Shown here: in pieces, positions 8,018-32,439 of the stretch
Layout: each line of letters begins with the position of its first letter
Position numbering within the stretch: the first letter of the stretch is position 1
Source of the DNA: Guillardia theta CCMP2712
Taxonomy: Eukaryota > Protista > Cryptophyta
Length of the DNA: 34,713 nt
Direction: 5' to 3'
Assembly (NCBI RefSeq): GCF_000315625.1
Contig: NW_005434667.1
Location: 98,780 to 133,492 of the forward strand
Notes under the pieces: generated by a model
Database searches by the model: none
What the model was told of the DNA's origin: nothing
Seen by the model: the letters and a program-made list of their open reading frames with translations, nothing else
Program-made: the position numbers and the translations under genes

Positions 8018-9945
8018 GCCGCGTACAGTACAGAAATAGACTGGGGGTGGTACCAACATCCAGGGACAAGATAGGATTCGACGCTGAAACATGATGAAAG
8101 GGGGGGGTGGGGGTACTTTACAAATGCTCTCTGGGGTGGGTGGTATTAAGAGAGTAAGGAATGTGAAAGACAGTAATGACTGATATAGGAAGAAGAGCGA
8201 TCGAGGAAAAGACAGCAAATACACTATAACTATATAGCGGCAGATTCATACAAATTTATAACACATTTGAAATCAATCTGTACCAGGTGCAAGGGTTGAA
8301 AAGGTGTGTTTTAAGCCTCCTCCAATAAAGGGGAATTTATATAATTATATGATATTATGTATAATTTGGGATGTTTTGTATAACCAGGTTTGACGGAGTG
8401 GTGTAACGTGTCGACATAACGAATGGGGGGAGAGAATAAAAATTTGGGAAGTAAATGGGGAAAACTAGGGGTAGGGGTAGTAGAAATTTATAATAATACC
8501 GGTACAAAATAGGTTAGAAACAGGGGTTCATTGTATTGTGATCATCGGTTGAGTGAAGGGGTTGAAATGGATCCAATGGGTAAGAATGAAGGGTCCAGTC
8601 AGCTCATAGTCAGCGGTTTTAGAAGGGGGTAGGGAGAAGGGGAAGGTATACATACCCCTCTAAATTGTTCCAAAAGCACGGGTAGACCTTGACCTATGCC
8701 CGAAGGAGGCGTTCTAGGATGGTGGGGTAGTGGTAGGGAGGCGCAAATCACTCCTCGGATCATCGAAAACTCTCTATTTCAAATCTCTTTAGTCGCAGAT
8801 ACCACGTGACCTATCTCCGCTCCGCAGATCGTACGAAATGGTATCCGATGGTAATGGAGATTCATACCAGTAAAGCAAACAGTACCATATATCTGTTCTG
8901 AAATGTGTACTGGTTTCCTGCATGGTACTATCCCCCTAGGTGGAGATCTACATAATGGTACAACCTCAGAGGTATCCAGGTTCCTACAAATTCAGTATGG
9001 TCCTAGAACAAGTGTATAAAAGGGGTATGAGTGATGGATTCAGGTAAGGGTGGTTCAGGTCTTGAGGCTATCAAATGAGGTAATGGTCAAGATCTTAGCA
9101 CTGAACTAGAAGGATCCGTTGTGTCCTATCGTGAAATGCGCAATCCTTCCAACAAGAATTTTTTGAGATGGGTGGGGGTGGCTGTGGAGATACCCACCAG
9201 GTCATAGGGGTTAAAACTATTTTTCCATATTCGATCACTTTTGAAAACGAGTCGTACTGTGTCAATAATTTTAAAAATATATCCTCCGAAACTTCAATGT
9301 TCCTCGAATCATTTGAACTGTGAACTACTGAAAACCAATTATGTTATAAAATGCTTCGTTTTATCCAAAAAAGACTTTTAAAAGTGTGGGGTCGCATCAA
9401 GGCCTTGAAAGGGTCCTAGGAGAGCTACGGGGCACAACTAGGGATATCGACTTGACCCCTATCTTCTCCTAACATTCTGTAAGCCAATGTGAGTAGGTGG
9501 GGTAGTACACCCTACCCAGCCTGACCTGAAATATTAGGGGGTGGGGTGGTGCTGTTAGGTGGCTGTCGGCGGCTATGGCAGTAGTGGAACGAGGGAAGGG
9601 GATGGGAAGGTAGCGTAAGAGCAAAAGGAAGAAGAGGAGGAAGAAGGAAACTTGATCAATCGTTCATCATCATCATCTCGCTTTCACAGACCGATCCCGA
9701 GTCTCATCCTGGTTCTTGTGCAGGTTTTTGTTTTGATTCGAGGTGTTTGTCACGTGTCTCGGTTAGCAAGCGGCTTTCTTGCGGGAGTTCATTTCCATGT
9801 TAGATCCCACCGTCTGAAATCTTTCGTCATGAGATTCACAGTTGTGAGGAGCAACATTGCCAGGTCGTTTTCTTTGTACATATTGCTGTGGTTATGCCCG
9901 CTATCCTTCGCGGGTCACAGCGATTGGTCGGGACTGGGGAGAGCG

Positions 9946-11953
9946 ATGCCTCTAGATCGCAGCTCAGCTCCAGGGTTGACAGAAAGGATGCTGGTGCAGC
10001 ATCGCCAGGACCCTGAGAGCAATGAGCACTCTGTCGAGTACGCATGCTCTTACGAGAACTTCGGTGCAACCACGATGCCGCTCTGCAGTTCTTTCGAAGA
10101 CTGCAACGAGGACGGCAACGAGATCATCTTTGCGGACAGAAACTGGGAGCCTGAGTATGCATGCTCATATCGTACAAAATCGTCAACCATGCCACCTCCG
10201 GGTCAAGCATGCCAAAAGATGGAACTGAAGGATGAACCAAAAACGCAAGAGTTTGTGCAATGCTCAATGCAAAACCGACGGTGTGAAGCAAAAGTTCGTT
10301 CTTCCATTCATCACAAGGCACAAGCGAATAATGGAAAGCTGGGAAGCTCCAAGTCGTTAGGTGCTATCAACTCTATCCAGCAAGGAGGACTCAGAGATCC
10401 CAAAGGCTCGGAGGAGTCGATGTGGAGGGAGGACGTCGGGAAGAGGTACAGGGAATTAGTACCGCCAAAGCCAAAACGGGTTTCTTCAACTATTGGGGGT
10501 ATATCAGAAGCGGGGATGAGAGATGCAATGGCAAGAAGTTTTAGTGCAGAGCTTCGTTTGACAGAGCAGAAGGTTGACGAGGTTGTCATGTTCTTGGATT
10601 TGGACAAATGTACAATATTTGGGAATGACGGAAACGACCTTGGTATTGCGCTTCAATGGATGGAAAAGCCTTACGAAGATGTCGTTGAATTGTATGCTCT
10701 TGTTCCCTGCTTTTATTTGAGCTTATTCTGTATCCAAGGTACCGGCACCTCGTCAATCCATGCCTAAAGCCTGCTTATGAAAAATTGAAATCAAAAGCTC
10801 ATAAGGTATGTGTTCTCTAACATTCAGGAGGGACGATGTAATGTATTTTGTAGGTCAAAGTGGTTATATACACCATGCGAGCAACTTTTCTACTGTATAA
10901 GTCTTGTTTCCGTCCTGCTGTTATCGTTCTGCAATGGTACGACAAGTGGCATCGCGATGGACAGATTTATTTCCCGAATGATGTGAACTCAGCGGGTAAA
11001 TACTTTTGTCGATGCCTTTCTTGCCTTACGCAAGTCTTGAAAGATGAACTTCTTGAGAAAACGAATTGGCATCTCCTGGACGAGGAGAGGACTGATATCA
11101 AGAAATCGTTGGAACGGCTGCTGGCGGCACGTCAAGTCGTGTTCGAAGAATTGGGGCTCGAATGCCTTCCCGACCTTGTGGTTACAGCTCAACCTAAGAA
11201 TGTGGAGAAGACAGGCATGGCGCTAGGATACAACCCCCAGAACTGCTTTTTGTGGGATGACAATCCGAAGTTGCATCTAGACCCGAAGGTGACAAAAACC
11301 TCCCTTTCGTTTACTTCTCACCATTTCGTGAATCTTGGAGCATGACTCTGATCAAACCGCAATGCACAGGTTTTGGGTGTACCTCCATATGAGGAGATGC
11401 TGGAGGATAGACAAGAGAAGCTGCTGAATTTCTTGAATGAGTGTCTGCCTCCAGAGCAGATGGAGGTTCGCATGTGTTCGATGACTTTGTGTGAATCATT
11501 CATTCTCCGTGTAGGAGGATCTGTGGGAGTTCATGTTAGGTGCGGGGCCCTGCGATGCTTCTCTTCGAGAGGATTCAGTCACTGGGGACAAGACGTATCA
11601 CGTCAAGACTACCAAGTCCTTGGATCCTTGGCCTATCCCTGAGTTCAGGTATGATTAAGTAACGATTTGTTATCGATGCTGAATAGCTCGTCAGGGCCAG
11701 TGAAGTTAGCGCTAAGATGCGAAAAGCGGGCTTAGCAGAGGAGGGAACACTTTCACCCGTCACACCAGACTCGGAATCTTCACCTCTGAGACCGAAGAGC
11801 TTCAACGAGCTGGATCGGCTTGTTGGAAAGAGGTTGGACTCTTGCGTGTTCTGCTCTCATATCGTAACATTGTACCACAGCCTAGGCGAAAGCAACGTGC
11901 GCACGTCATGGCAGGAGCTGAAGGGAGAGGGTCAAGAAGTGGGAGCATCATGA
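9946..11953 (+). CDS. HAD-superfamily phosphatase, FCP1/SCP (NIF)-like domain with a long N-terminal extension
   Basis: Spliced model with introns 10692-10738, 10806-10853, 10996-11043, 11289-11369, 11466-11514, 11649-11694 and 11833-11880, all GT-AG and phase-consistent. HAD motifs occur in order: VMFLDLDKCT (I), VVIYTMR (II), AQPKNV (III), CFLWDDNP (IV). The start could instead be 9829 or 9988. Confidence 0.75.
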
Positions 11954-12073: not shown

Positions 12074-12870
12074 CTATCTCCGAGCGTTGCCGATCTCACC
12101 GATGTAGGACGCCATCGACTGCGCTCGTCGGAGCTTGTAGAGTCGATGCATCTTGACATTGACGTCGTAGAGCTCGCGGTCGTGCAGCTGAATCTCTCCG
12201 ATGATGCGGAGGTGCTGAGCGTGCAGGATGACGTAGAGCTTCAGGTCGCGGTAGCCGTCCTGCACCACCGAGCACGAGAACTTGTTCTTGACTCGGCAGA
12301 CGCACAAGGAGTCATCCTGCAGCTCCAGGAACCATCGGGCGACTTGGAGGAGGTGCTGCGGCTTCTCGCAGACGATGGACAGGCGGACCGGGTCGAGGAT
12401 GTTGGCAGTGAGGGGCCATCGAGCTTTGCGGTCAGGAGGAGCGTACTCCTTCACCTTCTCCGCCATCCTCTCCGGTGTCTTGATGCTGGCATAAACTACC
12501 CGCACCGCCGCTGCCTCTTCCCCGAAGGAGCACAAGATCTCGAAGTCCTCCTCCCTCCTCCTCAGCTGCACGTCCCCGTAGCTGGAGGGCAGGGCCTGGT
12601 GCGCCAGGACGACGTCGGTGACTCGAGCACGGAAGTAGCCGTTGAGGATGGCGGCTCGAGCATGCAGCTGGGCGATGAAGGGAAGCTCTCCCAGACACTC
12701 CTTGTGCTGCCCCGAGGAGAAGCTCAGCTGCGCCTCTCGCCTCTGACCCTCATCCACCCGAATCGCACCCACCTAGTCAGGAGAATGAGCGGGAAGGAGG
12801 AAGTAGCAGCAGGGGCAGGGGCAGGGGCAGGGGCAGGGGGAGCAGGAGCAGGAGCAGCAGTAGTTAGAAC

Positions 12871-12925
<55 letters not shown>

Positions 12926-15669
12926 GGCAGCAGCAGGCATAAGGGCAGGGGCAGGGGCAGCATCGCGACCATGAGGACCGATGAGGAGAGGAAGAAGAGG
13001 AAGGAGATGAGGCGAAAGGTGATGGGGAGAGAGGGAGGATCTTCACATTCTCGTCGTCCTGCCTACAGACAGGCGTCAACTGCCTCCTCGACCCCCGATG
13101 CTCCTCCGTCGCCGAAGTGAACTTGGTCGCATAATCCTCCCAACATCGCAACCTTACATTCAGGGGTCATCTCCAAAACACGTCCTCGTCCTCCCTCTCC
13201 TGCTCCTCAGGGCCTCCCTCCTCCACCACCACCCTCTCCTGCCCTCCAATTCCCCTCCTCCTCGTCGTCTTCCCCTCTTTCTCACATTTCCTCCTCGCCG
13301 ATGATGCTGTGCCTCTTGCCGTCGTCCCATCGGTCCGCGCAGAAGGCTCTGAGCTCTTGGCCGAAGGGCCCAGCAAACAGCTCCTCCGACCTTCTCTCGC
13401 ACGCGGCGACGAAGTCGACCATGATGGAGCGAGCAAGGTCTTGAAGGTGAGAGAAGAGAAGCGGATGGTCCCTCCAAACTTTCATTCGCACCACCTTGTT
13501 CTTGAAGAACTCGAACCGCTGCTCGTGACTTCGACGCCTCGCCCTCTTCCACGACGAGTTGTACCTCCTTCCCTCCTGCTTCCTGCGGTGCAAGAACGAG
13601 AAGGAGGAACCCGATGGCAGCTCGTGCTCCAGTACGATATCAACCCGCTTCTCCTCCTCCTCCTCCTCCTCCTCCTCCTTCCCGCTTCTTCCAGGATCTT
13701 CCATGCCGTGCTCTAGCAGGTGCCGGCAGAGCTCCAGCAGCCACTCGCACAACCTGTCGTACTGAGCTGAGAACGCCTCGGACGTCATCGAGCTGTCCCT
13801 GACGCTGACGCAGAAGTTGTCAAAGAACGTCTCGTCACAGTCGTCTCGCAGCAGCGCCAGACGCGCCGCCGCCTCCATGGCAGCCTTGCCGATGAAAGTA
13901 ACCTTATCCCGGCTGTGCCAAAGAGCCAGCCTCTCGTTGCTCAGGTAGAACCCGTCGTGCCGTGACAGCCGCAGCTTCTTTCTGATAGTCTTGGTGGCTT
14001 CCATGACCTCCCTGTCCTCCTGCGACATGGTCCGTCTCGTCAAGCATCTGACGAGCGAGTACACACACAGGAGGACGACGATGGTTGGCAGGATAATGAT
14101 GAGCAGGAGCAGCGACATCTCGACACATGCTGAGTTCAGCGCGATCAAGCTCCCGTCGCAGACGCTGCAGTCCTCCTTCTTGGTCGCTCCCGGGCCCCTC
14201 GTGATGCGCCTGCCCCCGCACGCTATCGGCATGACCGACTGAGCAGGACAGTAGAAGCCGGTCGGGCACTCAACGGCAGGCTCGGTCCCTCCCTCGCACC
14301 AGTACCCCTCCGGGCAGGGGAGGCAGGAGCACAGGGTGGGGTCAGGGCTGTAGCCTCGAGCACAGATGAAGGGGACCCAGGTCCTCCATCGGTCAGGGTT
14401 TGACAGGATCCAGTCGCACGCGACCCTCCACGGCCCGGAGTATCCCTCCACCCCGCTTCTCTTGTTCTTGCCGCTTGCCGCCATGAGACCGTTCATGTCC
14501 TCGTCGTACAGGTTCATCTGGTTCACCAGGAACGTCACGTGGCTGCTCACAGAGGGGAGTCGCCGCCACACGTAGTTCCTCGGTTTGATCAGCGCAAGGC
14601 CCGTCCGGTAGATCTGCTGCTGGTACTCCAGCTCGTTGGTGTCTGGCAGCCTGAGCTTGACAGGAGTCTGACCTTCCAGTCCGAGGAGGTTGTCGTCAGG
14701 TTGATACCAGCCGAAGAGTACTTTCCTGGCCTTCACCATGGAGTAGTAGATGTCGTCGAAGGCTGCAGTGCCGTCTCTGACTTTGATCAGAGCAACGGGT
14801 ATGTTGAGCCAGAACGCAAGCTGCATCGCAACATGATACTGGTACTGCAGGACGAACGGGAGGCACTTGGAGTGATTAGCCAAGCACGCTGGGGAGAACC
14901 AAACCCGGTCGTCGTAGAAGCAAGCTGTTCCCTTGTTCCCCGTCTTCGCCTCATAGTTTGCCTTCTCGCGAGAGTTGCCGTACTTGACCTGATCCAGATC
15001 TGAGCAAGTCTCCACCGCCTCGATCGGAATCATGTCAAGAATCGACATCCAGGGGTCGAAGTAGACGTGAGGGTCATAGCGGGCGGCGTCATAGTACCTG
15101 TAGTAGTCCAGGAAAACAGAATCTTTCTGAGCCTGCTGCACCATCGTATCCCACAGAAAGAAATGATCGACAGTGTTGTAGTCGTAGACTGTCAGAAGGG
15201 TGGGTTGCAAGTGACTGGGCAGAGCAGACACGCGTCCGATACCGTAAGACCAAGTCTCGACGGTGATGTGAACAACAGGGTCTGATATGTTGTTGTCCTT
15301 GCACAGAGTGTCGTCGGGATTCTTACAGCCTGCAACGTACATGACGGGCTGACCTGAATGTAAAGCAGTGCCGTCCAGTAGCTGTACTTCAAACTGGAGG
15401 ATCTCGGCCAGGAGGATGTAAGTTATCTCAGATATGATGCGCGCAGAGGCCCAGGAGGCGTACGGGACCTTGAGAGGGTGTAAAGTGCCATCAGCGTACT
15501 TCAACCGTCGAAGCTGTTCTGTGCGAAGTTGCGAGAAAGAGGAGAAGTTGAAGCTAGGAGGGAAGCATTGCTTGTCGTGCGGGACAAGTTGAATAGTGCT
15601 TGCAGATGTCAAAGAACAGAGACGAAGTATAAGAGCAACAAGGAGAATCGACGACATTGATCTTGTCAT
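12074..15669 (-). CDS. Predicted single-pass receptor: signal peptide + periplasmic-binding-protein-II-like ectodomain + Cys-rich repeats + TM + cytoplasmic RelA/SpoT-like nucleotidyltransferase (about 1062 aa)
   Basis: Exons 15669-13286, 13152-13047 (optional in-frame 60-nt intron 13122-13063) and 12772-12074. Junctions AT|GTGAG..TAAG|G and AAT|GTGAAG..CTAG|GTG keep frame. Hydrophobic N-terminus SILLVALILRLCSLTSA. Ectodomain motifs ASWASARIISEITYILLAEILQFEV, VETW, LFGWYQPD, VACDWILSNPDRWRTWVP. Cys repeats CPEGYWC..CPTGFYCP. TM LLLLIIILPTIVVLLCVYSLV at 14050-14112. C-terminal motifs IKTPERMAEK, ILDPVRLSIVC, RVKNKF, GYRDLKL, EIQLH, MHRLYK. Confidence 0.8.
12806..12960. repeat. Intronic (GGGGCA)n/(GGAGCA)n hexamer microsatellites
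   Basis: Visible tandem repeats inside the predicted 13046-12773 intron. Confidence 0.9.
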
Positions 15670-22845: not shown

Positions 22846-24802
22846 ACTCCAGGGTTCGAAGCTTCTTCGTAGGAGATGCGGATAGCGAGAGTGCTCATGT
22901 CATGCTTGCTGTGGTCACAAAGATCAGCTCAAGCCTCCTCCACTTGTCCCACCTCCTCCTCCCCACCCTCCTCCTTGCTGATCTCCTCTCTGCCTCTCTG
23001 CCTCTCTGCCTCGTGCCTCCTGCTCTTCCTCTTCCTTTCCTTCCTGCTCCTGCTCCTGCTCCTCCCCCCCCCCCCCTCCCTCCTCCTCTTTCAACTGACC
23101 CTTGTCGCAGCTGCTCTGCGAGGGCGTCGATGTGCGCGGGGTTGAGAAGCGGCTCGTCTCCCTGCACGTTGATGACGTACTCAAACCTCCAGCTGTCCTC
23201 CAGCAGTCTCCAGCCCTCGTACACTCGCTCGGTCCCGCTCCTCCACGAGGAGCGCGTCATGACGGCTCTTCCTCCGAACGACCGCACGTGCTCCATGATC
23301 TCCTTGCTGTCTGTTGCCACCACCAGCTCCCTGCATGCTTCCGCATGCCCCGCCCTCCTCCATGTCCTCTCCAGCACCGTCTTGCCTTTGAGCTTTTCCA
23401 GCAGCTTGCCGGGGAAGCGCTGAGAGCCGAAACGAGCAGGGATGATGCAGACGATGGCCCCGTTGACCGAGCGAGGAGCAGGTTGAAAGAAGGCAGCGGA
23501 GGGGGAGAGAGGAGGGAGAAGGTCAGCGGGAGAGGGAGGGGAGGAGGTAGAGGTCAGGTGAAAGACAAACTGTCCTCCCTTCCAGGTCTCTTCCAAGACT
23601 TCTCTAAGCGCAGCATGCTCTGAAGAGGAGGGGAGGACGAAGTTGCTCGGCAGCAGTATAGGGGAGCAGCTCAGCCACCTGGAGAGGAGGAGGGAGAGCA
23701 GCTTCTGCTGCAGGGCTAGAGGAGAAGGATGAGATTGGTGGAAGACTCTGCCAACAAGTCCCTCAAGGGGGGAGGAGAAAGAAGAAGAGGCGATCTGAGA
23801 AAAATGAACTTTCTCCCACCCTGCTCCTGCTCCTGCTCCTGCTCTTGCTACTTCCCCTCGGAAGCTGAACCCAGAGGAGGAGACGAGGAAATCACATCCT
23901 TCCGTCTTGTTTGCCGCACCCTCGTCACAGATCACCTGCCAACTTTCTCATCAGCCAGCAACTTTCGCATCCTGGGACTCACGAGGTCCGTCGGCTCAGC
24001 GGTTGACGCGCTCCCTCCCGACAGGGGTTGAGCGAGCAGGCATCTCCTCTCCCTCCCCGACTCCTTCAGCCTCCTCATCGTCTCCGTCACGCTCCTTCCC
24101 CCTGGACTCGCTGCTGCCAGCACTCTCAGCATGCTGACCAGCCTGCACAGGAGGGAAGGGACCTTCTCTCCTCGTCTTTTGGCATCTTGTCGCCTCCCCC
24201 GTATGCTTCATCGCCGGCAGCTTCCACAGAGCCAGCCTGCGCGCGTGTCCGTAGTGGTTCTGCACCTTCGACTGCTCGTCCTGCCCTGCAGACAGTCGCT
24301 GTCATGCAGAGAGATGGAAGGGAACAAGGGGAATGCCGAGCAGGGGAGGGAGGGAGGGAGGGAGGGAGGGAGGGAGGGAGGGAGGGAGGGAGGGAGGGAG
24401 GAGGAGGAGGAGGAGGAGGAGGCAGTGGAGGTGTCCGACCTTTCTCGACGACCATCTCAACAGGAGCAGAAAGTTTGAAGGGAGCTTCGAGCAGGTTGAT
24501 CAGGTGCCAACCCCCGACCTTGATGTCCTGCATCATCATCGTCATCATCGTGGATATCATTGAAGGGTCGTCTCAAGAATTTGTATCATCTCTGCTCTAA
24601 TGATTTCACTCCTCACTACCATAACCACTTTCTCCTCGTCAACCTCTCACTTTCGTCGCCTTTCTCACCGGCCAATTGCTCGTAAGTTCCTCGTCAAAGT
24701 GCGAGAGGAGAAATTTCGACTTGCTCGCGTCGAAATTTTTCAAAGCCTGAGCGCACAAATCAAACATTGTAGCTAGATGAAGATAATTACAATAAGGGTG
24801 AT

Positions 24803-24867
<65 letters not shown>

Positions 24868-26167
24868 TTGTTGTTGTTGTTGTTGTTGTTGATGATGATG
24901 ATGATGATGATGATCGCATATCACCTGTACAGCGTCGAAAACAGGCAGGTGAAAGAGAGTATCACGGCAGACGATCAGATCAAAAGATCGGCCGATAGGC
25001 TCCCTGACGATATCCATTGTCTGAACCATCCACGGAAGATGAAAAGTCAAGGAACAAGTAACGTTCACAACAACAACACTCCTCTGCACCTCGAATCTCA
25101 TCTTCTTCCACTCTTTGAATTGCTTCTTGTTGTTCTCAATCAGCTCCGGAACGATGTCAACACCAACATATTCAACATTTCTCAACTCCTCCACGTGCTT
25201 CTGCATCTTGAATCAAACATGTCTCAACACACTTCACCCAAACCTGCCAGTTCAGATCCCCACAACCAGCATCCAGCACCGATGTGATGTTGTACCTGCT
25301 CTTCAGAGTTCAGTCCAAGGAACCAAAGGCTCAATCAGTCATCAACACAAGAAGTCAGCAACACAGCAAGATAGCAGGACAGGAAGACAGGCAGACAGGC
25401 AGACAGTAGGACAGGAAGTCAGCAAGACAAGAAGGCAACCGTTTTATGACGTCAGCGAGGAACGATCTTGAGGTGTTTGTACGAGATAGAAAGGAACCTG
25501 TTCGCCACATCCATATCATCGACATCTCCCCCCGTCGTTGCTCAAGGAACTACAACGAACCTGGCCCTGATCGTGATTCTCTCGTGCCTTCCAGCTCTGA
25601 ATCCCATCCGTACGTGTTGTAGACATGCTGGAACACTCGTCTCCGCTCCTCTTCCCTAATCCTGTCTTCTCCTCCGCCCTCGCTGCATGCCGACTTGAAA
25701 CTGACCCACACTGACGACCCCTCTCCCTCCACCTGCGACGGTGTTGATCAGTCCCTCATGCTAACCGTCGCTCCTACCTTCCATCCTTCCTCATCGACCA
25801 GCACAACTTCCACGAAGTGCCATTGCCCGCAGCGTCTGCCCTCCCCAAGAGGAACTTTTCCTATGAACTCGTTTCCTGCATGAGGCAGCGATTCTGACTG
25901 GACGAACACCCCGTCAAGGTAGAGGGCAAACCCTCCTCTGTATGATGAAGACGACGAGTCCTCGCCCTCTCCCACATTCCCTGCTCCGATCCTGAACTCG
26001 ACCTGACCACGTTCGTCCAGCAGCAGCTCTTCTCCCTCCTGGGGACTGATGATTCGGACAGGAGGGAGGGATACAGCGGAGGAAGCCAACTCTTCACCAA
26101 CAAGAGCATCGCAGGAGCACAGGGACAGGAGGAGGAGGAGGAGGTGATAGGGTAGCCGTACAGCCAT
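22846..26167 (-). CDS. kdsB: Fusion: signal peptide + Ig-like domain + class I SAM methyltransferase + CMP-Kdo synthetase (3-deoxy-manno-octulosonate cytidylyltransferase); 3' end lost in the gap
   Basis: KdsB motifs IIPARFGSQRFPGKLL, LVVATDSKEI, SGTERV, VINVQGDEPLL, MSTLA...EEASNPGV. MTase motifs VFQHVY..GW..SRSGPGS, SVLDAGCGDLNW, YVGVDIVPELI, DLIVCRDTLFHL, DIKVGGWHLINLLEAPFKL, RRLALW. N-terminus MAVRLPYHLLLLLLSLCSCDA. Linker introns 24162-24114 and 23982-23936 keep frame. The gene symbol applies only to the C-terminal domain. Confidence 0.8.
24802..24914. repeat. Intronic (GAT)n-(GTT)n-(GAT)n compound microsatellite
   Basis: Visible tandem trinucleotides between methyltransferase exons. 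Confidence 0.95.
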
Positions 26168-27077: not shown

Positions 27078-28059
27078 ATGCCTCGCTCGCCCTCACGTAG
27101 TCGATCGCCGAATCGCTCCAGCTCCAGGGGGAGGGATAGAACTAAGAGGTCTAAGTCACCTGTCTCGAGGAAGCGGGAGTCGACTCCGACGCTTGCCAAG
27201 GTCACGGTTGAGAACCTGACAAGGAATGTGGGAGAGGCTCACTTGAAGGAGATCTTCGAGTCTTTCGGCAAGATCAAGACCTCCAGCCTCGATTTCAGCG
27301 AGCGGTCCAACCTGCCCACCGGGACAGGTTTCGTGGAGTATGAGAAGCGCGAGGAGGCGGAGGAGGCAATCGCGGCCATGGATGGCTCTCAGATCGATGG
27401 GAACGTGGTCTCGGTGCGCTTCATGAGCTCGGCTCCTAAGCGAAGGGCAAGCCCTCCGAACCGTCACAGCCCCCCACGGAGAAACTCTCCTCGACAAGGT
27501 GGTGGCAGGGGCCCGCCGCCACGCAGAATGTCTCCTCCTCGCAGGGGAGGACCTCCTGGCAGGAGACCTTCACCTCCTCTCAGACGTCGCAGCCCTCCCG
27601 GTCGCAGCCCCCCTGGTCGTTATCGTGGGCCTGGAGGGCCTGGAAGGAGCCCCATCAGGAGGAGGAGCAGGAGTCCCATTCGAAGGTGTCTGTTCCTCAT
27701 AGCTGTTTGACTCCCTGACAATCTCGCAGACGAAGCCCCTCGCCCAGGGGAAGGTATCGCCCTCGACGCTCCCGCTCCCGCTCCCGCTCCCGCTCCAGAA
27801 GGTCCAGCCGTTCCAGGTCCAGGGGCAGAAGGTGATTCAACTGACCTCATGGTCTGGCGTGTGGTGAATCCTCATACTCGCAGGCGATCTCGCTCCTCCT
27901 CTCGCTCTTCTCGTTCCTCGTACTCCTCCTCCTCAAGGTCTCGATCCAGAAGCAGATCCAGGTTTGTCTCGTCGATTCGCCGGATGTTTGGTCAATGACT
28001 CGTCGTGTAGGAGAGGAAACCGTTCGAGATCTCGGTCTGGTGGAAACAAGAAGAGGTAA
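27078..28059 (+). CDS. RNPS1: RNA-binding protein with serine-rich domain 1 / SR45-like splicing factor (RRM flanked by RS/RP-rich regions)
   Basis: The RRM KVTVENLTRNVGEAHLKEIFESFGKI...NLPTGTGFVEYEKREEAEEAIAAMDGSQIDGNVVSVRF carries the RNPS1/SR45-typical LTRNV..HL.EIF and MDG.QIDG motifs. The RS/SPPRR tail continues over three short introns to TAA at 28057-28059. Confidence 0.85.
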
Positions 28060-28209: not shown

Positions 28210-31200
28210 TTAGATTTCCTATGAAACACGTTTGTATCATGTCACGCTGACAACAAGACTTGAGTAGCAAGCAATGTTTCCTCACCAGCTGATCGGTGTC
28301 GTCGTCGTCCAGTAGCGACGATGCCAGGGATTTGTTCTCGAAGAGCTACAGGCCGTTAGAGAAGGAAGTTGAGCATTGGCACCTTACCTTGTGCGAGAAG
28401 AAGCTACCAGCAAGCTTGTTACCAGCCAAAGGTTTCAGATTTCTGCAAGAATCTCTCACTGACAAACATGTTGCCACTTTCGACTCACAATCCATGTCTT
28501 GCGATTGCCCCTAACGCATTCAAGTTGCCTGGAGTCCCTTTCTCTTGTGCTGTACACAATGATCAGCTCTCAATATCACTTCAACAGTTTGAACCTTCAG
28601 AGCCTTGAGGCTTTTCAAGCATTGCAGCAGACGAGGGGAAGAGACCTTTCGTCGGCAATGAAGTCGTTATTCCTTCAGCTAGCGAGGTGTTGGCAGATAT
28701 CGGCCTGGCCACGTCACCGGATGGTCTGTTAGGCTCGCTCGAATTCTTTTGCGATGCGAAAGAGTAGTCTTTTCTACAGAAAATGGCATCATCCTCGTCC
28801 AAACACTCATCTTCCATGCTCTGCAGCAAAATTCTTTTCTTGTTTGGTCCAAAGTTGAAAATCTGATCTATTCGATCCAGGTGTTCCGATTTCCGCTTCT
28901 CATTAGCATGGCCTATGGGGATATTCTCTTTCAAAACTGTAGGGAATGCGCTTCGAAAGAGATTTGTCTTCAGGCCAGGCTGAGATGCGAGAGTCTTCGT
29001 CACTTCTTTTGAAGAATTAGAGGAAAGTGTCAAAGTGCAAGGTGGAAACGTTTCAGAAGCTCTGACCCCTTCAGTCTGTGACGGATCCTTTGGCACTTCC
29101 ATGCTGTGCTGAGAAGTCTCGACGTCTCCCTCACCTACACAAGAATTGCTCTGCTTTGATGGAGCCGGTTCTTGCGCTTGTTCGTCCAATTCACTCATTT
29201 CACCCCATGTGCTTCCTACACTGAATTTGATTCTCATGGGCACGTGGAGCGTCGTGCTCTCTGTCATGCCTCTGTTGATAATCTTTGTAAACTTAGGTAG
29301 TTGATCCTTCGGTAGTTCGAATACAAGCTCATCTGAAAGAGACGTCAGCTGACATTGCGTGAAACACAACCCATCGGAACTCACCATGAATTTGAAGGCA
29401 CAATCTACAAGTCTCTGCCAACCCCTGTTTCTTGAGATCCAGCAAAATGAACTTCATGGCCCTTTTGATGATGTCTGCAGCAGTGCCTTGGATCACGGTA
29501 TTTACTGCTTGTCGCTCAGCATATGCCCGTTTTGCACTGTTCTCCGGGCCATTGAGAGATATGTCTGCAAGTGGTCTTTGTCGCCCTGATAGGGTCACAG
29601 CATAACCTCTACTTTTGACAATATTTCGACAGGATGATTGAAATTCTTTGACTTTTGGGAAAGCAGAATAGAATGTTGAGATGTGTCTTGATGCTTCTTG
29701 CTCAGATAGACCTAACCTTGCTGCCAGGCTTTTACAGCCAAGCCCGTAAAGCAAGCCAAGAACCTGTATTTCAATTCAAAGGGACAGAAACAAAATGCAA
29801 AGGAGAGCGAATCCACATACCACAGTCTTGAATGTCGACCTTTCCTGTGTCGTGATGCTATCAAATGGTTTTTTCAATACATGACTTGCAATTCCTGTGT
29901 AAGGACAATTGTTTTCACTCAGCAGCTTGATCAAAGAGGGGTCATTGCAGAAATGTGCCATGATCCTTAGCTCACATTGTACGTAGTCTGCAGCCAATAA
30001 GACGTTTTCGTTCCTTGCAACAAACGCATTTCGTATGTTTAATTCCTTGGTCATGTCTTGTCTGTTTCCAAAGCGAATGGAGTCTGCCTTTGGAACGTTC
30101 TGTAAATTCGGATCTGAGCTGGACAGCCGTCCTGTGCAAGTCGAAATTTGACTCCAAGAGGAAAATATCGAGCTGACTGTATTTCCCTGTGGGCATTTCA
30201 CAGCACGATCACACAGGGGAACCACAAAGCCTTGCAGCATTTTGCAGATGTGTCCTGGCAAGAGAATATCAGTAGAGATCAGACACGGCACAGAGCAGTA
30301 CGATGTTCGAGTATGATTGCAGGTAGCGGATGAAGATTGATCAAAGATTGCAAAGTTTCTTCGTTTGTTGAGTATTGTTGATTGGCGCCTTTGAACTTCA
30401 TTGTAGAATTGTTGTTTAGATTAGGCGGTGGCAACTTTAACTCTTCAAAAAGAACAGAGCAAAGCTGTTGAGGGGAGCTTAAAAGGACGGGATGACCTAC
30501 AAGTTTTGTGGCTTCTTCCTCCAATTCGATGAGCTTCCTTTCCATCTTGCGTTTCTGATCTAATAGCTGTAGGGGAGAAAAACCAATTCCGTTCATTTCC
30601 ATGAGGCAAAGGACAAGAATGAAATCCATCTCTTCTTTTGTTGCGTTAGCCATTTCACGCATCATCAGTCGTGAATGGACCTCCTTGCCTATGGATAGGC
30701 ATGTTGAAAGGTTACCAAAAATGTTGAATTCGCTCTCAGCATCGTCTTCAGAAACATCACAATCTGGCAAATATTTGTCTGCTAATTGCGTGACATCAAT
30801 CTTATCGAAATTGCAGTCAGGGTCCATCAGCCAATGCCCTACTGATAAACAAAAGATTTCAGTTCCCAAAATGCCATGAGAATCAATTTTGGGAAGAATG
30901 TGCAGCAAACTGGCTTTGACATTGTAACTGTAAATTCGGCATTTTGTTTGTGGACTGAACACTTTCTGCAGAAAAAGAGTCCTATCCTGCAAAGTATTGT
31001 AGTATCTAATTTCGTCCCTCAACGGAACTAAGATTCGTTTCAGCTTTGGTTCCAATTTGTCTCCGGCGACGTAGAAGAGGATTGCGAGGCACGATCTTGT
31101 TTCGCTTTTTTTGTATGAGTTCCGTATATCCGTTTCAAAATTATCGTACAGAATCCCAAATGAAATCGCAGGAGACTGGTGAAAACTTTGATATATATCC

Positions 31201-32439
31201 TCGAGTCGTTCTGCACTTACCATGCCAATATTTGTGCAGAACTTGTTCAAGTCCTCCAACTGTTGCCTGATGTCAAGGTTTGGAGCTTGCGACTTGGATT
31301 TCACACTTTGTTTCTTCCCCAGAAGTTCTGTACACATTTTCTTCGTTTTTGACGAAATGTTGGGCTGGGTAGTATGATTCTTGCTATTGACTTTGTCACA
31401 TTTGGCCTTCGTATGTCCCGATTGCCCGCACTCTGAACATTTCTTCTTTGATTTTGATTTTGATTTGGAGCTTGACAGGTCTGGCGTTGAATTTTTACTT
31501 GGCACACCTGATCGTTTCGAATTATGGGAGTCTACGTTGAATGTTTCCAGATCACGTTGCATTGAAATAGAGACTGCACATCGCTCCCACGGATCGGCTG
31601 TTTGAGAGTAAACTTGGCCAAGGGTTGGCTGAAAAACGTTTGACTTGGTTGAAGACGCATTTGCAGCATTGCGGAAGACATCTTCGTAGTGGTTAGACGG
31701 CAACTCTATCAAGTCTCTGTCAACATGGTCTGTCTCATTTTGCATTTCATCATTATCGGGTAATCCTTCCAAGTTTGAGGCCTTTGCGGCAACATCACTA
31801 ATTTCTTGGCCTGCATTGAACTAAAATCAAGGATGTGCAAGTGTTGAACATGTCAAAACAGATGGAGTGAGCAAAGGAAGAGAAATGAAGAATTCTGCAT
31901 CTGTGTTCTAGAACAGAGACTCACATTCATCGCCATCGCTGGCTGCATGTTCTTCATCCGACTCGTCTTCCGATATGTCGAAGTTGGGGATTATGCTCTG
32001 AGATCTGGATGCATGCTGCTGAGAGCTCGAGCTCGACGCCTTGGAGTTTGAAAGCTCCTGACTGCCCGCAGATCCTGCACATGGAGTGTCAGGAAGAATC
32101 ATGACGTTGTTGATCACCATTGACACGAAAGAAGGCAGATGCCGCATCCTCGAGCCGTTGAGAGCAGTTGTTGTCTTGGAACAAGGAGGAATGGAACTCT
32201 ATCGAAGAATACTTCTCCAACCCCTGCCAGTCTCTAAAGAACGTCGATCGGAAGTGGTTCGGATCCGGCGGACGAGGTTTCCAACGGAAGCATGTCATTA
32301 CAGCAAGCTGCGTCGCGGAATGTGCTCAGCAGGAGTACGAGATTATGTTGAAGAATGGTTGCGCTCGTGGACCTCTCACCATGTTGCATCCGCTTCTAGC
32401 ATGTCCCTTGCCTCCCGCTCTGCCGCCATCATCTCCCAT
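28210..32439 (-). CDS. Family A DNA polymerase (Pol nu/theta-like polymerase domain, no helicase) with an N-terminal CCHC zinc knuckle and a low-complexity C-terminal tail
   Basis: Thumb motifs LSSPQQLCSVLFEELKL, YSTNEETLQSL..LHPLPAIILEHR and TCTGRLSSSDPNLQNVPK. Motif A LLAADYVQCELRIMAHF. Motif B RSTFKTV|VLGLLYGLG. AERQAVNTVIQGTAADIIK. Motif C LQIH|DELVFE. Multi-exon. The start (32439 or 32471) and the terminal exons are less certain. Confidence 0.9.

Follow-up and report, generated by a model that had tools for sequence, protein, structure and literature searches.

A receptor-like cryptophyte protein with a RelA/SpoT-synthetase-fold domain behind a single membrane helix

Alarmone synthesis by eukaryotes is established in plastids. 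A nuclear gene of the cryptophyte Guillardia theta CCMP2712 raises the question of whether a domain of the RelA/SpoT homologue (RSH) type can also serve as the output of a membrane receptor. The gene, publicly annotated as "hypothetical", occupies the minus strand at 12074–15669 of a 34,713-nt stretch of contig NW_005434667.1 (positions 98,780–133,492; hereafter the window, from whose first letter positions are counted), and was originally predicted to encode a cell-surface receptor with a cytoplasmic RelA/SpoT-like synthetase. The architecture is real and apparently undescribed; no account of it was found in the searchable literature, which omits most subscription papers.

Fold, relatives and active site of the C-terminal domain

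The C-terminal domain is encoded by the last of three exons, for which an AlphaFold model with a pLDDT of 88 was obtained. With this model, all 50 rows listed by Foldseek were RSH-type or small alarmone synthetase (SAS)-type entries, and the top 11 matches in VIA were all RSH synthetases, the best having a Z of 13.3 (root mean square deviation (rmsd) 5.1, 157 residues aligned). Z values were 12.9–13.3 for the RelP/RelQ type, 11.8 for SaEAS, 10.7 for CapRel and 10.3 for Tas1, compared to 7.5 or less for other nucleotidyltransferase families. A structural match to the RelA/SpoT nucleotidyltransferase fold, whose absence would have counted against the original prediction, was thus found. On the predicted model, assignment of exon 3 to the RelA/SpoT synthetase (SYN) fold is secure, and the domain resembles RSH enzymes more than it does other nucleotidyltransferases of the pol-beta type.

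At the sequence level, the only matches outside the family were to the SYN domains of the XopAD and RipS (SKWP) effectors. The NCBIfam model NF041399, for a C-terminal stretch of XopAD, matched the exon-3 domain with an E-value of 3.9e-5; this match spans about 125 residues at 21 bits against a cut-off of 2000, and the SKWP repeats and full length that define the family were not found. XopAD/SKWP-related models matched 11–15 of 54 homologues, and tblastn returned Ralstonia matches. Sequence searches of the PDB, searches of phage genomes and pattern searches of bacterial genome contigs were blank, and the protein had no Pfam or fold match to a class III cyclase domain.

Residues were numbered within exon 3 (adding 826 gives the numbering of the public gene model P0045) and mapped onto SaEAS by way of the Ralstonia SKWP effector domain, which the family profile matched at 87.7 % in hhalign and which in turn matched SaEAS (8vx3) with an E-value of 4.7e-7; the printed chain and the SaEAS paper differ in numbering by an offset of 35. 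In this mapping D127, R130, R160, K178, E193 and Q195 correspond to SaEAS D121, R124, K154, N169, E182 and Q184. The D121A substitution inactivates SaEAS, the other five residues bind ATP and are shared with Apk1, and the enzyme makes both pppApp and pppGpp (PMC12691689). The catalytic Asp...Arg pair and the ExQ of SYN domains were found as D127, R130, E193 and Q195. Among 183 non-redundant homologues, conservation was 100 % for R130 and N163, 99 % for D127, K98 and E193, and 98 % for Q195 and K106, relative to a median alignment column of 46 % and with some inflation from the picking of homologues by profile. This suggests that the active site is likely to be under constraint.

Gene structure, topology and the receptor family

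Much of the originally predicted layout held: the in-frame join of the 795-aa and 232-aa open reading frames (ORFs) through GT-AG introns, the signal peptide and single membrane helix with type I topology, the lack of a Phe after the likely signal cleavage site (by eye), the lack of an HD hydrolase, the existence of paralogues with the same architecture and, as probable, an OpuAC-like ectodomain of the periplasmic-binding-protein type II (PBP2) class. The three exons (Table 1) give 1062 codons plus a stop with zero internal stops, and neither intron length is divisible by three. The public model P0045 (GUITHDRAFT_133234, 1058 aa), to which exon 1 is 100 % identical, is itself a prediction and has identical junctions; the start codon is Met1 (15669) or Met5 (15657), the latter being used in the public model. 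At intron 2, the eight closest genomic copies, of which the window gene is one, all show RQD and at most three further codons at the end of the exon ahead of the GT, and an AG immediately 5' of V-x-A-I; the same acceptor is also seen at five further loci. RQD..VxAI is uninterrupted in the Hanusia phi transcript proteins P0007 and P0077, and an exon-2-like stretch sits within the long first ORF of the paralogue P0047. Intron-free ORFs with sensor, membrane helix and tail were found in P0077, P0068 (MMETSP), P0182 (three Logan runs), L081 and L083, and exon 3 has no ATG start. Comparative support for one joined protein is strong: the intron-2 position is common to eight copies, and in transcripts of related cryptophytes a single ORF spans the sensor, helix and enzyme domain. 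Each exon of the window gene was searched separately, P0045 being used as one row in alignments; sequencing-run shares of 0.16–0.83, from runs of guessed or unknown type, were uninformative on splicing or expression, and exact look-ups of contigs for this gene were blank.

Topology and signal peptide were judged from hydropathy rather than with a predictor. There is only one strong membrane segment (aa 506–545), with a Cys cluster at aa 436–515, and a membrane helix is found at the equivalent place in the long homologues. Three of the four N-glycosylation sequons lie N-terminal to the segment, as do most sequons in all five paralogues, and hydrophobic leaders are present in paralogues too. The hydrophobic N-terminus, the one membrane segment with basic residues after it, the preceding Cys cluster and the N-terminal sequons together point to a type I topology, which would place the C-terminal part in the cytosol. 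For the ectodomain, 30 of 30 hits in the ESM Atlas were to PF04069 (OpuAC), with a score of 0.91 and 179 shared features, and Pfam OpuAC matched two of ten homologues weakly (best E 0.097). A PF04069 search of the genome gave no match, and the ectodomain had no sequence hit in the PDB and gave a blank plasmid search. This evidence is moderate and suggests that the ectodomain is probably an OpuAC-like PBP2 clamshell; by analogy, a betaine-type ligand is a lead only. The Cys-rich stalk matched PF07699 below the cut-off (E 0.0095–0.017).

The helical domain between membrane and synthetase-like domain accompanies the latter in the long homologues. A predicted model of the tail of the Hanusia homologue P0077 folds as a single unit (pTM 0.83); this whole-tail model was made on P0077, not on the window protein, and the helical domain was folded only as part of it. 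A search for an HD hydrolase gave no Pfam hit and no conserved His in the helical region, and alignments of Rel and SpoT structures with the P0077 tail model covered little beyond its SYN part. By these comparisons the helical domain is not a recognizable HD hydrolase, and it may be a natural coupling or autoinhibitory element. Two other identities were considered and rejected: a pseudo-HD domain was unsupported by structure alignment, Pfam or a conserved His, and the Sey1/GBP helical bundles returned by the Atlas (0.84 or less, low recognition) were not credible.

This ectodomain occurs in five full copies in G. theta, all five with the tail, and a closely related synthetase-like domain was found at about 15 G. 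theta loci. The tail of membrane helix, helical domain and synthetase also stands behind CHASE (GUITHDRAFT_162182), ANF-type (GUITHDRAFT_110646, 122367, a pair on contig C80 and others) and phosphonate-binding sensors. Conversely, in the Cryptomonas paramecium transcript P0048 the same ectodomain, Cys stalk and membrane helix lead not into the RSH-fold tail but into a protein kinase and a region with a weak match of the TIR_2 type (E 0.029). These proteins form, by their sequences, a modular receptor family. Sensor and output swap in both directions, as in receptor families, and this is what speaks most strongly for the RSH-fold domain as a signalling output. All homologues with an organism name came from cryptophytes (Guillardia, Hanusia and Cryptomonas), and 710 representatives scored below 1e-10. 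Deep branches of the homologue tree were unresolved, the OpuAC-type copies falling on one side at only 75/93 and the RipS row being too long to place, so we draw no conclusion from it on a donor or on the sequence of events.

At C130:48297–48581 the ectodomain is present as a partial copy interrupted by an in-frame stop. Long intron-free ORFs of up to about 1500 aa in the G. theta genome carry RSH-like domains that are more distantly related, in many cases two of them. Eukaryotic clusters with the same fold in the ESM Atlas (TM 0.73 and 0.57) include ciliate and diatom members, so that divergent domains of this fold may be common among protists. Within the window, the convergent neighbour gene (9652–11345, plus strand) had no Pfam match and by eye only is HAD-phosphatase-like, with a DLD-x-x-T word and a later DD. 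The remaining annotated neighbours are unrelated.

Table 1. Coordinates of the gene, its predicted protein regions and other features (window positions unless a contig is named)
Feature	Position	Strand	Remarks
Exon 1	13286..15669	-	2384 nt, 794 codons + 2 nt; signal peptide, ectodomain, Cys repeats, membrane helix, helical domain
Intron 1	13153..13285	-	GT..AG, 133 nt, phase 2
Exon 2	13047..13152	-	106 nt; linker, conserved RQD word at its end
Intron 2	12773..13046	-	GT..AG, 274 nt, phase 0; position common to paralogues
Exon 3	12074..12772	-	699 nt; RelA/SpoT-synthetase-fold domain
Signal-peptide-like hydrophobic N-terminus	15601..15669	-	Hydropathy (aa 4–29); no Phe at likely +1 (by eye)
Ectodomain, probably OpuAC-like PBP2 sensor	14368..15600	-	ESM Atlas and weak Pfam
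Cys-rich stalk, ephrin-receptor-like repeats	14125..14367	-	PF07699 below cut-off; Cys positions
Single transmembrane helix, basic residues after it	14050..14115	-	Hydropathy peak 3.08
Cytoplasmic helical domain, conserved	13286..14037	-	Acidic low-complexity insert; no HD match
Exon-3 residues of note	K98, R102, K106, D127, R130, R160, N163, Y174, E193, Q195, H209		Exon-3 numbering
Distant RSH-like ORFs	C18:576–579 kb, C49:530–533 kb, C97:5.7–8.4 kb, C206:46–57 kb, C1:834–841 kb		
Cytidylyltransferase	22895–23935	-	Unrelated neighbour
Methyltransferase fragment	24790–25206	-	Unrelated neighbour
RRM protein	27078–27710	+	Unrelated neighbour
Family A DNA polymerase	28581–31772	-	Unrelated neighbour

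Proposed output and rival explanations

On our leading reading, which we put at even odds, the protein is a cytosolic pyrophosphokinase that is gated by a ligand and produces a nucleotide of the alarmone type. In this scheme, the signal peptide would direct the PBP2-type clamshell to the outside (or a lumen), where the Cys-rich stalk would tie it to the one membrane helix, with the helical and synthetase-fold domains in the cytosol. The clamshell would shut on a small solute, for which the OpuAC resemblance makes a methylated amine or an osmolyte plausible. By analogy with receptor cyclases and kinases, closure would act through the helical domain and a movement of helices or of the dimer, and so switch the synthetase. 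Pyrophosphate would then be moved by the synthetase from ATP to a purine nucleotide, at its 3'-OH, and the product would be a cytosolic (p)ppApp- or (p)ppGpp-type messenger. The transfer step is proposed because of the fold and the conserved D127, R130, E193 and Q195, and the likeness of the motifs to those of SaEAS and Apk1 tips the balance slightly towards an adenosine or mixed product.

Several observations weigh against this reading, along with the inflated conservation values above. The Pfam model RelA_SpoT (PF04607), originally expected to match the last 232 aa, was unmatched in the window protein and in 33 homologues. The five motifs quoted in the original prediction are present, but their spacing is of the Apk1/SaEAS/XopAD type (D-x-x-R, E-x-Q-x-H) and not DxxGxR/ExQIRT, and the mapping onto canonical RSH motifs was too generous, since RxKxxxSxxxK lacks its Arg and Ser here and YxSxH its His. 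In motif 1 both Lys residues (K98 and K106) are retained, whereas the Arg is absent (Pro or Ser at 96) and Arg102 replaces the Ser. In place of the motif-3 Y-x-x-x-H/N, Y174 is kept (87 %) and position 178, equivalent to SaEAS N169 and Apk1 N370, is variable (K 34 %, M 32 %; also S or Q). In the paralogue P0047 (L037:3565–4368) and its Hanusia orthologue P0077, R102 is gone, and so are the GYRD word and HxxY. The ligand class depends on a language-model match and a weak hidden Markov model hit, the activity is a prediction from sequence and fold, a search of the G. theta genome yielded no stand-alone HD_4 hydrolase, and we know of no cytosolic target in cryptophytes. As a separate observation, P0047 and P0077 retain the D, R, E and Q despite their lost motifs, and are candidates for a degenerate partner subunit.

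Two other accounts of the output we consider unlikely, both to the same degree. One is an active receptor-gated pyrophosphokinase with a different acceptor, such as a tRNA 3' CCA end as in CapRel/FaRel2, another RNA end or a metabolite; the output would then not be a diffusible messenger but dormancy, defence or a direct arrest of translation. This account is consistent with the retention of the donor-side residues D127, R130, R160, E193 and Q195 alongside a replaced motif-3 His/Asn, with the fixed state of the family-specific R102, D176 and W-P word, and with bacterial effector domains being the closest sequence relatives. CapRel (7ztb) likewise gave the longest structural alignment (174 residues, rmsd 3.8, Z 10.7), but it scores no higher than RelP/RelQ (Z 13) and identity is only 9 %, and a toxic output behind many nutrient-type sensors would be less economical than a messenger. 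The other account is a pseudoenzyme, in which the RSH fold binds ATP/Mg or an alarmone as an allosteric scaffold and signals via protein partners, much like the kinase-homology domain of receptor guanylyl cyclases. Absence of the motif-1 Arg and motif-3 His/Asn, the variable HxxY (H 54 %, Y 72 %) and retention of the degenerate paralogue in both Guillardia and Hanusia favour it, as does Arabidopsis RSH1, where loss of the motif-1 Arg accompanies absent synthetase activity (PMC6881373). However, the acidic catalytic pair and the Q are near-invariant in the 183 sequences, the Ralstonia SKWP domain similarly has no Arg two places ahead of the motif-1 Lys, Arg102 may stand in for that Arg, and the protein contains no other enzyme domain.

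Two further alternatives concern the protein rather than its chemistry. Location in the endomembrane system (endoplasmic reticulum (ER), outer plastid (chloroplast-ER) membrane or other), with the same enzyme sensing a lumenal solute, is improbable. A signal peptide plus one membrane helix leaves the destination unfixed, and in cryptophytes the ER and the outer plastid membrane are continuous, but the ephrin-receptor-like Cys stalk and the ectodomain-concentrated sequons of all five paralogues are typical of surface proteins, and conventional HD+SYN long RSH genes exist separately on two other contigs (C47:131–133 kb and C24:131–132 kb). More improbable still is a gene-model artefact joining a 795-aa membrane protein to a separate small synthetase-like gene: the junctions of the window gene are known from prediction and comparison, not from reads, but the intron-2 signals shared by all eight copies, the contiguous RQD..VxAI of the Hanusia transcripts, the five intron-free ORFs and the lack of an ATG to start exon 3 all argue against it.

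Relation to known systems and significance

Receptor guanylyl and adenylyl cyclases and receptor kinases have a periplasmic-binding-protein-type ectodomain, one membrane helix, a helical linker and a cytosolic nucleotide-using enzyme. The window protein has the same layout, and relatives use the ANF_receptor ectodomain, but its output is an RSH-fold, pyrophosphokinase-like domain instead of a class III cyclase or kinase. The nearest characterized type is the group of SaEAS (Streptomyces exported alarmone synthetase) and Apk1/Tas1 (6ox6), with which it shares the SYN fold, the D-x-x-R spacing, a basic residue before N-x-F/W, E-x-Q-x-H and H-x-L-Y. Those are exported or injected soluble bacterial enzymes, whereas here the domain forms the C-terminus of a eukaryotic membrane receptor, with Lys in place of SaEAS N169/Apk1 N370 and Arg in place of the motif-1 Ser.

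The type III effectors XopAD and RipS match the exon-3 domain in sequence, but the window protein is host-encoded and has one SYN copy with no SKWP repeats or RdRP-like unit. Their SYN domains have been called RelA/SpoT-like (PMC3482391, PMC13667924), and because these papers give no biochemical activity for them, no function was transferred. RelP and RelQ, the best structural matches, are stand-alone cytosolic enzymes with only 13–14 % identity to the domain, in which their canonical RxK, DxxxxR and YxSxH are not kept. Plant and algal long RSHs and the eukaryotic divRel SAS are likewise eukaryotic proteins with a SYN domain. The long RSHs are HD+SYN plastid enzymes, unlike the present protein with its one strong membrane helix, and divRel proteins are synthetase-only (PMC3153485, PMC6881373); neither PMC3153485, a survey of RSHs, nor PMC6881373, on algal RSHs, uses the word transmembrane. 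The window protein is therefore outside the long RSHs, the receptor cyclases and the SKWP effectors, and it departs from two canonical SYN motifs.

Cytosolic alarmones in eukaryotes are an old unresolved question, with unrepeated reports (PMC3153485). That cryptophytes run a cytosolic second-messenger pathway of the alarmone type, in which surface receptors with interchangeable solute sensors would respond to a bound ligand by making (p)ppApp, (p)ppGpp or a novel pyrophosphorylated nucleotide, is a serious possibility that we place slightly short of even. The 232-aa domain, with its defined catalytic residues, is a directly testable candidate enzyme, and results would bear on the SYN domains of the XopAD/RipS effectors, its nearest sequence relatives. 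If the proposal is true, receptors coupling outside solutes to a cytosolic RSH-type enzyme would be a new class of eukaryotic signalling, in a role parallel to that of the cGMP and cAMP receptor cyclases of other eukaryotes.

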